Under the pieces are notes generated by a model that made no database searches, was not told the DNA's origin, and saw only the letters and a program-made list of their open reading frames with translations. From Macrostomum lignano (taxonomy: Eukaryota): a stretch of DNA of 64,000 bases. Position 1 is the stretch's first letter, and each line of letters begins with the position of its first letter. Below are positions 32,702 to 62,462 of the stretch, in pieces. The DNA lies in the NCBI GenBank assembly GCA_002269645.1, contig NIVC01000993.1, positions 1 to 64,000 on the forward strand. The letters run 5' to 3'. Both the position numbers and the translations under genes were made by a program.

Positions 32702-35700
32702 ATGTTTTTAATTTATGTGCAAGGTAATTCCAGACTCAGCTGCAAACTAAAAAGTTGAATCAGTGTAGTATATAATTCATGCAGTTCATTCACAATAATT
32801 AATAATAATTAATTGCAATCTTAATAATCTTTGCACATTATTTATGGATAATTTATACACGGTCGTAGTTTTGTGATAAGTTTGTTGCTACAAAACTATT
32901 GTAATACATTTGTAATATATATTGTAGCTCGTTTATTTACATGTACTATTATAAATAAACTATTGTAAAGAGATACGTTTTACACATACCTATTAAAATA
33001 TTCATGTGATTCATTTTTTTCATTTTTAAACTTTTAATTTACAGTAAAACGCGCAATTTTGGTCACCAGCCACTGTCCATGGAGCCCCAGCTGTCTAACT
33101 TTTGTCAGCATTCGTTTAAACAAAGTCAAATCTAGCACTGTGGCTTTGTCTGGCATGGCGCCAAATTGGGAGCAGGAGTTTATTTTGTAAGTCAAAGAAA
33201 GTTCATTTGTTTTTGTAAATGAAAATCAGTATAACAAACTCCTAATTTGACTTTCATCTTTTATTGCCATCAGATTTAAATTAAAAACTTGAAATTATAT
33301 TTTGGATTTCATGAAAAGGATCACGTAGTATTAATACATCGCAAAAATCTGATTTAAAGATAACGCTAAAGTCGATTTGCAAGTCGGCATTCGTAACATC
33401 GACACACTGCAAATTCTATTACGAACGATAATTTTAAAGTATCTTATCAAATTTCACGTGTAGTTATTCCTCCAAAAACTAACCCTTGCGACAATATTTA
33501 CGTATTTGCATACATGTTGTGTTTTAAGCCAGAGAAAAAGTCCGTGTCGAACCGGTCCGGTGAATTTCAATCAGTCAGTCCGTGAGAGCTGACAAACCTC
33601 AAACTAATAGCTACTGTTAATTAACTTGAAAACTTCTCTCCCTTACCCTTCTCCACCTCTGATTTTTACGCGGAACTTCACCAAAATTCTTCACAATTTG
33701 CAGTGAGGCCAGCCCAGCTGACGCTGGCTTAGCGGTGGAGCTATGGCGCCTGCCAAGACCGTTAAAGCAGCAACTGCCGGACTACGATGAGGCTCAGAGG
33801 CTGGGCTGCGCTTGGATACCGCTGCATCACGTAATTCAAACGGACGAGGTAATGCGGAGAAGGAGAGCAATGGGGATTTCAGGGAATAAAGGGGAAGAGG
33901 GGAATTTCAGGGAATGAAGAGGGGAAGAGGGGGAATTTCAGGGAATGAAGAGGGGAAGAAGGGAATTTCAGGGAATGAAAAGGGGAAGAGGGGGAATTTC
34001 AGTGACTGAAGAGGGGAAGAGGGGGAATTTTAGGGAATGAAGAGGGTAAGAGGGGGAATTTCAGGGAATGAAGAGGGGAAGAAGGGAATTTCAGGGAATG
34101 AAGAGGGTAAGAGGGGGAATTTCAGTGACTGAAGAGGGGAAGAGGGGGAATTTCAGGGAATGAAGAGGGGAAGAGGGGGAATTTCAGGGAATGAAGAGGG
34201 TAAGAGGGGGAATTTCAGGGAATGAAAAGGGGAAGAGGGAGAATTTTAGGGAATGAGAAGGGGAAGAGGGGGAATTTCAGGGAATGAAAAGGGGAAGAGG
34301 GGGAATTTCAGGGAATGAAGAGGGGAAGAGGGAGAATTTCAGGGAATGAAGAGGGGAAGAGGGAGAATTTCAGGGAATGAAGAGGGGAAGAGGGGGGATT
34401 TCAGGGAATGAAGAGGGGAAGAGGGAATTTCAGGGAATGAAGAGGGGAAGAGGGGGAATTTCAGGGAATAAAGAGGGGAAGAGGGGGAATTTCAGAGAAT
34501 GAAGAGGGGATCAATGTGGATTTTTGGAATTACGAGGGTCAGAAGGGATTTCAGTGAAAGTAGAGGGAGGGAACGGGGGTCTTAGAGAATTAAAAGGGAG
34601 ACGGTGGGGATTTCGGGAAATTTTGGCGTCTGAGTCAAGAAATTCAAACCTTAAAGGTACAGAGTTTCTTTTCAAAGCGAAATCAAACACGAAAGTACCT
34701 GTTAAATTAAATTTATTAAAAAAACAGACTCGTTATGTGAAATGTGAAAAGAATATTTTACTTGCTCTGACCTGATGATGATGACTTTGATGACTTTGGA
34801 GCTGAGTACGGGGGATCAGGCCGGATCGAGAGGTAAGCAGGAAAAGTCTCGCCATGATGCAGAAAGGAAGCATGACATGAGAGAGAGAGAGGAGAGGAAG
34901 ATTAAAGTAGGATGGGCCACTGAGAAGCAGCTCCTTAGTCTATCCGGAGTATACAGTCGTACTGCACCTGCGGCTTGTTAAGGCAACTTTATGCCGAGCA
35001 GTTGTTCGACAAGAGTTTAGGGACAGTCGAACTTGCACGACATGAGAGGGGAAGAGGGGGGAGTCTGTCAGCAGAGAGAAAGTAAGAGAGGTAGAGAGCA
35101 GCAGGTGAGCTGTGTGACTCGTTAGTGCAATTAGTTCTGAAAAGTAAAGCTTTTGATACAGGCTAGTGTGGACCAAGGGCTAGCAGGTTCCATGCGCATT
35201 TCTGATCTCTTCCTGTGGATCGCGGGCACTAATGAGATGAGATAAGGTAAGATAAGCTTAGATGAGATAAGATTAGATTAGATGAGATAAGGTGAGGTGA
35301 GGTGAGGTGAGGTAAGATAAGATAAGATTAGATGAGATAAGATAAGATACGATTAGATTAGATCAGATTAGATTAGATTAGATAAGGTGCCATGATGAGA
35401 TAAGAAAACAATAAAATTAACTTTAAAACCATCTGATAGCTATAAATTAAATTATCGAGCCATTTTGATAACAATAAGCTCCCAAATCGAGAGTGCAAAT
35501 TCTTTTCACATTAATACTCAATGCTCCTAACTCACATACCTGACTTGGAAGTAGATATACTACTCACATATACTACTCAATCGCTACTTACCAGAGCTCT
35601 GAGGGTCGCTGGCTGAGACTGGACTCAAGCTTCATCACCGACTCAAACGGCAAGCTCATTGTGGGCACCCGCGGCTGCGCTGGTCACCGCCTCCTGCTTG

Positions 35701-62462: not shown

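Follow-up and report, generated by a model that had tools for sequence, protein, structure and literature searches.

A possible second, C2A-less N-terminus encoded within an intron of the unc-13 gene of Macrostomum lignano

The stretch of Macrostomum lignano DNA considered here (assembly GCA_002269645.1, contig NIVC01000993.1, positions 1 to 64,000; in its entire 64-kb length hereafter called the window) carries on its plus strand, from position 32702 to its end, what its sequence supports well as the 5' third of an unc-13/Munc13 gene, a gene of synaptic-vesicle priming. Inside one of the introns of this gene lies a large open reading frame (ORF) that we consider, with the balance tilting modestly in favor of this reading, to be an alternative first coding exon, so that two different N-termini would share all exons from 61751 onwards. 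The identity of the gene follows from the combination of a Munc13-type C2A domain, a calmodulin-anchor motif followed by an intron at a conserved position, and the conserved motif preceding the C1 domain (the pre-C1 motif). In the original prediction, which had been made from the sequence and proposed an unc-13 gene with two isoforms, it is this identity that holds firm, whereas the second N-terminus is deduced from the geometry of the gene only. The six-frame motif scan, the list of ORFs and the tblastn searches were all confined to these 64,000 nt, which are genomic DNA of a metazoan in composition, the exons being rich in GC and the introns dense in micro- and minisatellites.

The C2A domain is encoded by four exons (Table 1) that splice in frame from 32702 to 35724 to give a 146-aa product. 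The search of the spliced product for a C2A domain, which had been suggested as a check, was carried out and did find one: phmmer against all sequences of the Protein Data Bank (PDB) returned the C2A domain of Munc13-1 (2CJT/2CJS) with E=1.3e-18, the next-best C2 domains, those of PKC, reaching only ~0.1, and the Pfam C2 family matched above its cut-off (E=2.8e-5). When 120 N-terminal fragments of Munc13 proteins were combined into a profile, the product aligned with it from Met1 onwards (MSLLCV.. N-terminus; E=4.9e-31), and exons 2-4 were each detected by tblastn with unc-13 fragments of a nematode, a scorpion, a mite and a bug (E values from 2e-7 to 3e-5). Exon 1, for its part, equals in both length and phase the first exon of unc-13 of the mite Galendromus (22 nt, phase 1; ATG…ACC G/GTAAGT). 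The homologues used for the profile were collected with a two-sequence profile (window and rat), which yielded only fragments of ~400 aa or less, mostly vertebrate, and neither a full-length invertebrate orthologue nor an isoform with an alternative N-terminus. When the C2A, calmodulin and motif sequence of the window was used in a word-indexed search for homologues, no matches were obtained because this sequence is too divergent for an index of 5-mers.

This divergence is evident in the domain itself, which shows 31-43% identity to any homologue found and in which the near-invariant WNKG(L/M)(I/L)WD stretch has been replaced by an insert that is nine residues longer. In other species, C2A is the module that binds RIM and homodimerises, and the residues of the rat domain involved in homodimer formation and RIM binding are K32, E128 (which contacts RIM) and E137. 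The equivalent of K32 is retained in the window (NKVKSST), the residue aligned to E128 is Gln (35700-35724 region), and the equivalent of E137 is E only when the uncertain exon 35908-35999 is included. RIM binding or dimerisation of this C2A domain may differ in the lineage. As to the mite locus mentioned above (Galendromus occidentalis, JH621050.1, 10001-28515), unc-13 is annotated there as a 390-aa model containing C2A only plus a separate downstream model of 1730 aa, which begins in low-complexity exons, and the N-terminal ambiguity is thus of the same kind as in the window; no match to PLVSDL or W…F..V was found in this locus within 10 kb downstream.

The last exon specific to the long form carries a candidate calmodulin site with an anchor of the Munc13-1 type. 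Across the six reading frames of the window, the motif W..AF..V occurs a single time, at the exon ending at 45345, and its anchors W-x3-F-x2-V match the rat peptide present in 2KDU (chain B, checked). This Trp-Phe-Val spacing corresponds to the 1-5-8 part of the 1-5-8-26 calmodulin motif of Munc13-1 and ubMunc13-2 (PMC3794949, PMC7017353). Positions W1, F5 and V8 are all present, and position 26 would be D, with F at position 25, if 61751 is the next exon. Three fish Munc13 fragments (P0023, P0061, P0124) read …W(L/I)(R/K)(L/A)F..VRLQLQE and then, after a Val, end or diverge, and the donor at 45345 falls after the very same fourteenth residue of the motif. A Val following residue 14, as in the fish fragments, is what read-through of a phase-0 GT donor would yield, which indicates that both the position and the phase of this intron are conserved. 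The calmodulin and pre-C1 peptide found no match in the PDB, because the solved Munc13 constructs begin just after the motif.

Two further exons would be common to both forms. The reading frame was checked and, just as had been predicted, the phase-0 donors at 45345 and 51722 can both join 61751 and then the second shared exon, which contains IDIMPEV…PLVSDL. Joining a phase-0 donor directly to 62372 leads to a stop codon, and a bridging exon with a length of 2 modulo 3 is therefore required. Between 51.8 and 62.3 kb (10.5 kb, scored leniently) three AG…GT intervals qualify as such, and 61751-61812 is clearly the best of them. The segment at 62403-62462 displays the conserved pre-C1 pattern (I)DSMPD/E(I/V)R..K/R..PLVSDL and is identical at 13 of 20 positions (65%) to rat Munc13-1 IDSMPDIRKRKPIPLVSDL (tblastn within the window, E=0.004). 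The query was the presumed rat pre-C1 segment, IDSMPDIR-KRKPIPLVSDL, the two flanks of which were checked and matched 2KDU and 5UE8 exactly. The C1-C2B-MUN-C2C core would then be located beyond position 64000, and no C1-like exon was found in 62463-64000. One candidate for the next exon, 62918-62964 (ELKKYTFKAMV at 62933 compared with rat ELKNHVYKKTL), was rejected, being out of phase and AT-rich.

The proposed alternative exon lies on the unc-13 strand in the intron that separates the last long-form-specific exon from the first shared exon. The 942 codons predicted for it, with an ATG of its own and a phase-0 end, agree with the 2826 nt counted from ATG 48897 to the donor. The full ORF (48897-51839) encodes 980 aa, and its ATG is found eight codons after an upstream stop. 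It is a genuine ORF: the open stretch amounts to 988 codons, when the longest stretch in 1000 first-order Markov simulations of this 4-kb region averaged 242 codons and never exceeded 551, its tandem repeats are restricted to a (GCA)16 run and a 27-nt repeat of 7.6 copies (together ~250 nt, or ~9%), and its GC3 of 0.70 exceeds GC1 and GC2, as it does in the confirmed genes of the window. The acceptor scores of the AGs immediately upstream of the ATG, which lie in a stretch rich in purines, range from -6 to -13 on a crude scale that gives confirmed exons +1 to +3; with acceptors this poor, splicing into the 5' end of the ORF, as an internal exon would require, could not take place. Some 200 nt upstream of ATG 48897, the segment 48670-48717 (plus strand, frame 0) shows some similarity to SIPPPYYTTSQPNASV, a linker conserved in vertebrate Munc13 (tblastn E 0.44); we judged this SIPPPY resemblance to be probably due to chance, and it could otherwise be a remnant or a small exon.

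The protein encoded by the ORF has no Pfam family. Exhaustive phmmer against 1.84 billion representative proteins returned only low-complexity matches to its MATQPAPSP repeat (the region of the 27-nt repeat), a word-indexed search with the ORF and the shared exons produced 8000 candidates, presumably through low-complexity words, with none of them significant, and scanning metagenomes for the ORF gave nothing either. The product, in which S, A and P abound, is predicted to be almost wholly disordered: AlphaFold2 run without an alignment assigned it a mean predicted local distance difference test (pLDDT) score of 34.7, and 896 of its 942 residues scored under 50. The original prediction described it as a novel low-complexity N-terminus, which is too strong a framing given that the published C2A-less N-termini of Munc13/UNC-13 (worm M domain, bMunc13-2, Munc13-3) are likewise long, unstructured and without homology to each other or to known proteins (PMC8066380). 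Because the N-termini of C2A-less Munc13 forms are unrelated to one another in sequence, an orphan and disordered ORF is the expected state of affairs, and its lack of homologues and its disorder agree with an alternative N-terminus and are no point against it.

AlphaFold2 placed helices at residues 411-419, 863-890 and 917-935 of the ORF, the second of which is the best element (pLDDT ~62). In a separate scan for hydrophobic moment and motifs, residues 873-892 form the top-ranking basic, proline-free amphipathic segment and hold the sole 1-5-10 hydrophobic pattern with net positive charge in the ORF, located ~50-65 residues before the end of the 942-codon segment. The helix at 863-890 thus looks like a candidate 1-5-10 calmodulin site. 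In all Munc13 isoforms, a single calmodulin site is described N-terminal of C1 and at a comparable position (PMC7017353), and the lone 1-5-10 helix near the end of the exon parallels this arrangement. A calmodulin site at a similar distance before C1 is, however, a feature of the mammalian isoforms and has been reported to be absent in fly Unc13B.

At the 3' end of the ORF segment, the GTAAGC donor at 51722 is in the sole phase that reads through 61751-61812, whereas use of the donor at 51663, though it looks stronger, would lead to a stop in that exon. There are, nevertheless, a number of points that weigh against an alternative first exon. With a crude matrix, the donor at 51722 scores 4.1 and that at 51663, in the wrong phase, 8.0; agreement in phase by itself has a one-in-three chance of arising; and the exon at 61751 is without homology support. 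Beyond the donor, another 39 open codons precede the stop that the ORF has of its own, in the manner of an intronless gene, and an RBR ligase gene is nested in this very locus. A TATAAAA at 48315, with CAGTT ~35 nt downstream, is one of 18 in the window and represents a promoter match at chance level. No transcript, expressed sequence tag, junction read or annotated protein of this species was found in the collections searched, nor a record of exactly the 980-aa product of the ORF. Finally, synonymous-codon scoring showed no preference of the last third of the ORF for its own frame; this scoring was trained on the 1613 codons of the confirmed exons of the window, discriminated poorly even on control ORFs, and is not relied on here.

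The main rival explanation, which we regard as rather unlikely, holds that 48897-51839 is an independent gene, intronless or separately spliced, that encodes a disordered protein, is nested in the unc-13 intron on the same strand and is never joined to unc-13 exons. It would agree with the ATG and the stop that the ORF has of its own, the latter at 51837-51839, 117 nt beyond the proposed donor, with the mediocre quality of this donor and with the lack of any unc-13-related sequence in the ORF, and nesting does occur at this locus, as illustrated by the antisense RBR ligase at 41357-44089. However, the 2.8 kb that follow the stop are devoid of canonical poly(A) signals (AATAAA or ATTAAA), and the 10 kb downstream consist of tandem-repeat arrays in which no further exon is convincing. 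Moreover, the GTAAGC donor is in frame with the one bridging exon of good quality, and the position of the ORF matches that of the short-form exons in the worm gene: in the L-M-R naming of Kohn et al. 2000, the M (short-form) exons reportedly lie between the L and the R exons. An internal cassette exon of the L-M-R type, in which part of the ORF would be included in the long form through an internal phase-0 acceptor, so that the ORF would not, or not only, serve as a first exon, appears to us unlikely. The two best acceptor-like sites within the ORF, 50388 (score 3.7) and 49617 (score 2.9), are indeed both in phase 0, and the donor at 45345 could therefore join them in frame and bring the 3' part of the ORF into the long form. 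Yet two sites in phase 0 have a one-in-nine chance of occurring, and as the sites beside the start of the ORF are unusable, the first 240-500 codons and the ATG following a stop would be left unexplained.

It is also conceivable, though least probable in our view, that only the C2A form is made and that the ORF, lying in DNA rich in GC, is an open frame that is decaying or has no function, for example a recently dead exon or gene or an expanded repeat. The GC content of 61-64% over 48-52 kb makes stops rare there, other frames in this region are open for up to 244 codons, codon scoring was inconclusive and homologues are lacking. Against this, 988 codons are far outside what the simulations, which keep the composition, produced, only a small part of the ORF is tandem repeat, and the excess of GC3 is as in confirmed genes.

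We thus prefer to see the ORF as an alternative first exon, which we infer to be transcribed from a promoter of its own and spliced to 61751. Two promoters would in that case yield two proteins sharing everything from exon 61751 on. The long form would start at ATG 32702 and comprise C2A, a long P/S/Q-rich linker and the Munc13-1-type calmodulin anchor ending at 45345. The C2A-less form would start at ATG 48897, carry a disordered N-terminus of ~942 aa with one or two helices in its last 80 residues, and proceed from 51722 to 61751. By analogy with UNC-13L/S(MR), ubMunc13-2/bMunc13-2 and Unc13A/B, the long form would be tethered near Ca2+ channels and mediate fast release, and the C2A-less form would sit further away from them and tune release probability. 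More tentatively, and as a possibility that we would not press, the 942-aa N-terminus may be a lineage-restricted orphan module that was recruited independently onto the unc-13 core, with only a calmodulin-type helix kept near the junction. Were this true, C2A-less Munc13 isoforms would have been invented convergently and repeatedly rather than inherited from an ancestor, here with the whole module contained in a single exon.

The N-terminus of the long form was originally given as eight phase-compatible exons, amounting to 746 codons and ending in phase 0 at 45345. We were able to reproduce this model exactly, as the four C2A exons followed by candidate exons 5, 6 and 7 and the calmodulin-site exon (boundaries in Table 1), but its exons 5-7 are not uniquely fixed: with loose splice filters, 190 other three-exon fillings likewise total 746 codons, and hence phase compatibility of eight exons does not constrain this part. 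Exon 5, on which the 746-codon model depends, leaves the score against the homologue profile nearly the same, 94.7 bits with it and 95.7 bits without it, and its use or non-use sets the acceptor of exon 6 at either 38224 or 38231. Exon 6 aligns weakly, in the profile, to the acidic vertebrate DDRDSDYRSETSNS linker. The 5' boundary of exon 7 is ambiguous (39549-39795), and no Pfam family was found in it; its support comes mainly from an open stretch of 463 codons, which is inflated by the 15-nt tandem repeat at 40068-40484, compared with a maximum of 442 in 1000 simulations.

Table 1. Features of the unc-13 locus in the window (a slash marks the exon boundary at a splice site)
Feature	Position	Strand	Remarks
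Long-form exon 1	32702..32723	+	ATG, MFLIYVQ + 1 nt; donor G/GTAATT; 22 nt, phase 1
C2A exon 2	33045..33186	+	tblastn; part of the 2CJT phmmer match
C2A exon 3	33704..33848	+	carries the 9-residue insertion in place of the usual WNKG.LWD
C2A exon 4	35595..35724	+	contains EGRWLRLDS; tblastn and 2CJT match
Candidate exon 5	35908..35999	+	donor GAG/GTAAGT; needed for the 746-codon model; uncertain
Candidate exon 6	38224..38471	+	acidic linker; donor CCT/GTGAGA; open frame directly before the (ATAG)264 array
Candidate exon 7	39549..40922	+	large P/S/Q-rich linker with (SQQPQ)n repeat; donor AGG/GTGAGC
Calmodulin-site exon, long-form-specific	45261..45345	+	ends 45345/GTGAGC, phase 0; acceptor alternatively 45227
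942-codon ORF segment, proposed alternative first coding exon	48897..51722	+	own ATG; donor 51722/GTAAGC, phase 0
Predicted helix, ORF residues 863-890	51483..51566	+	AlphaFold2; candidate calmodulin site
First shared (bridging) exon, predicted	61751..61812	+	62 nt; acceptor TTTCAG/, donor CG/GTAAGC; signals and phase only
Second shared exon, pre-C1 motif	62372..62462	+	ends /GTGAGT; tblastn to rat Munc13-1

Several other features of the locus and its surroundings were encountered. The antisense gene in the unc-13 intron between 40922 and 45261 (41357-44089, minus strand) is an Ariadne-type RBR E3 ubiquitin ligase gene, with two ORFs, 44089..42305 and 42124..41357, that are separated by a short gap and both contain IBR domains, the best PDB match being ARIH1 (8e-10). 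Flanking the calmodulin-site exon are two copies of an interspersed element of ~235 bp (44229-44449 and 46964-47198; 87-96% identical), the core of which, …TTTTACAGCTG…GAACTGA.GCAATGCAGAGTTA.GTGTCTTGCTCA.GGAC…, resembles short interspersed nuclear elements (SINEs) of the CORE/MIR type; an exact-match scan of metagenome contigs with this core found none. The unc-13 introns also hold exceptionally long tandem arrays at 38479-39536, 59965-61142, 52527-54502 and 58444-59508, namely (ATAG)x264, (TTAG)x294, a 16-mer x124 and a 21-mer x51, several of which account for lengthy but spurious entries in the program-made list of ORFs. Rfam and tRNA scans gave no matches.

Upstream of unc-13, all on the plus strand, there are two ORFs of the SNAP family (soluble NSF attachment protein; 2805-3281 and 5410-6348), the N-terminal parts of which are 50% identical over 96 aa and which represent tandem paralogues or else alternative exons used in a mutually exclusive manner; no record of the exact product of a SNAP ORF was found. 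Another vesicle-fusion gene is thus located ~26 kb upstream of unc-13. They are followed by a gene of the TTL family (tubulin-tyrosine-ligase-like; 7569-12267), with TTL exons at 10764-11291 and 11581-12267 and a preceding low-complexity ORF rich in Q, H and D (7569-8927), and by large ORFs of 846 and 329 aa (21035-24743) with a GC content of up to 70% and a weak fibronectin-III match below the Pfam cut-off.

The design with two N-termini is already known from worms, flies and mammals, and what we describe here is a further instance of an established architecture. It leaves the current picture of Munc13 function unchanged and, for annotation, represents an ordinary improvement of a gene model. 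If real, however, the second N-terminus would provide an independent example of the C2A-anchored versus C2A-less design of a central vesicle-priming protein, and would help to ask whether C2A-less N-termini arose once or repeatedly, and which minimal features (disorder, a calmodulin-type helix, distance to C1) are common to those that are otherwise unrelated.

A close parallel is unc-13 of C. elegans, where UNC-13L (LR) contains C2A and a calmodulin motif and UNC-13S (MR) contains the M domain instead, both on a shared C1-C2B-MUN-C2C core (PMC3743133, PMC8066380, PMC8762327), a design that the one predicted for the window matches. The M domain, too, has no homology to any other protein (PMC8066380). 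In the window, by comparison, the C2A-less N-terminus would be a single 2.8-kb exon of ~942 aa, the use of which is predicted, and the core falls outside the 64 kb. Compared with other C2A domains, that of the window is also unusually divergent, both in its longer insert in place of WNKG.LWD and in the change of rat E128 to Q. Mammalian Unc13b offers a similar pair of splice isoforms, in that ubMunc13-2 has C2A and a 1-5-8-26 motif, and bMunc13-2, without C2A, bears a site of the 1-5-10 type about as far from C1, the Munc13 N-termini being otherwise divergent and largely unstructured (PMC7017353). As far as patterns in the sequence go, the window resembles this pair, with W1-F5-V8 anchors in the long form and a lone 1-5-10 pattern in the alternative exon. 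In contrast to ubMunc13-2, position 26 is not Trp, the F at 25 being reached across the 45345-61751 junction, and in contrast to mammalian Unc13b, neither an ELKS-type coiled coil nor any sequence similarity was detected in the window. In Drosophila, finally, Unc13A and Unc13B are two N-terminal variants of one core that differ in how far from Ca2+ channels they place the sites of release (PMC8762327, PMC7997984). Fly Unc13A lacks C2A (PMC8762327), whereas the long form of the window has it, and in this respect the gene described here is closer to those of worm and vertebrates than to that of the fly.

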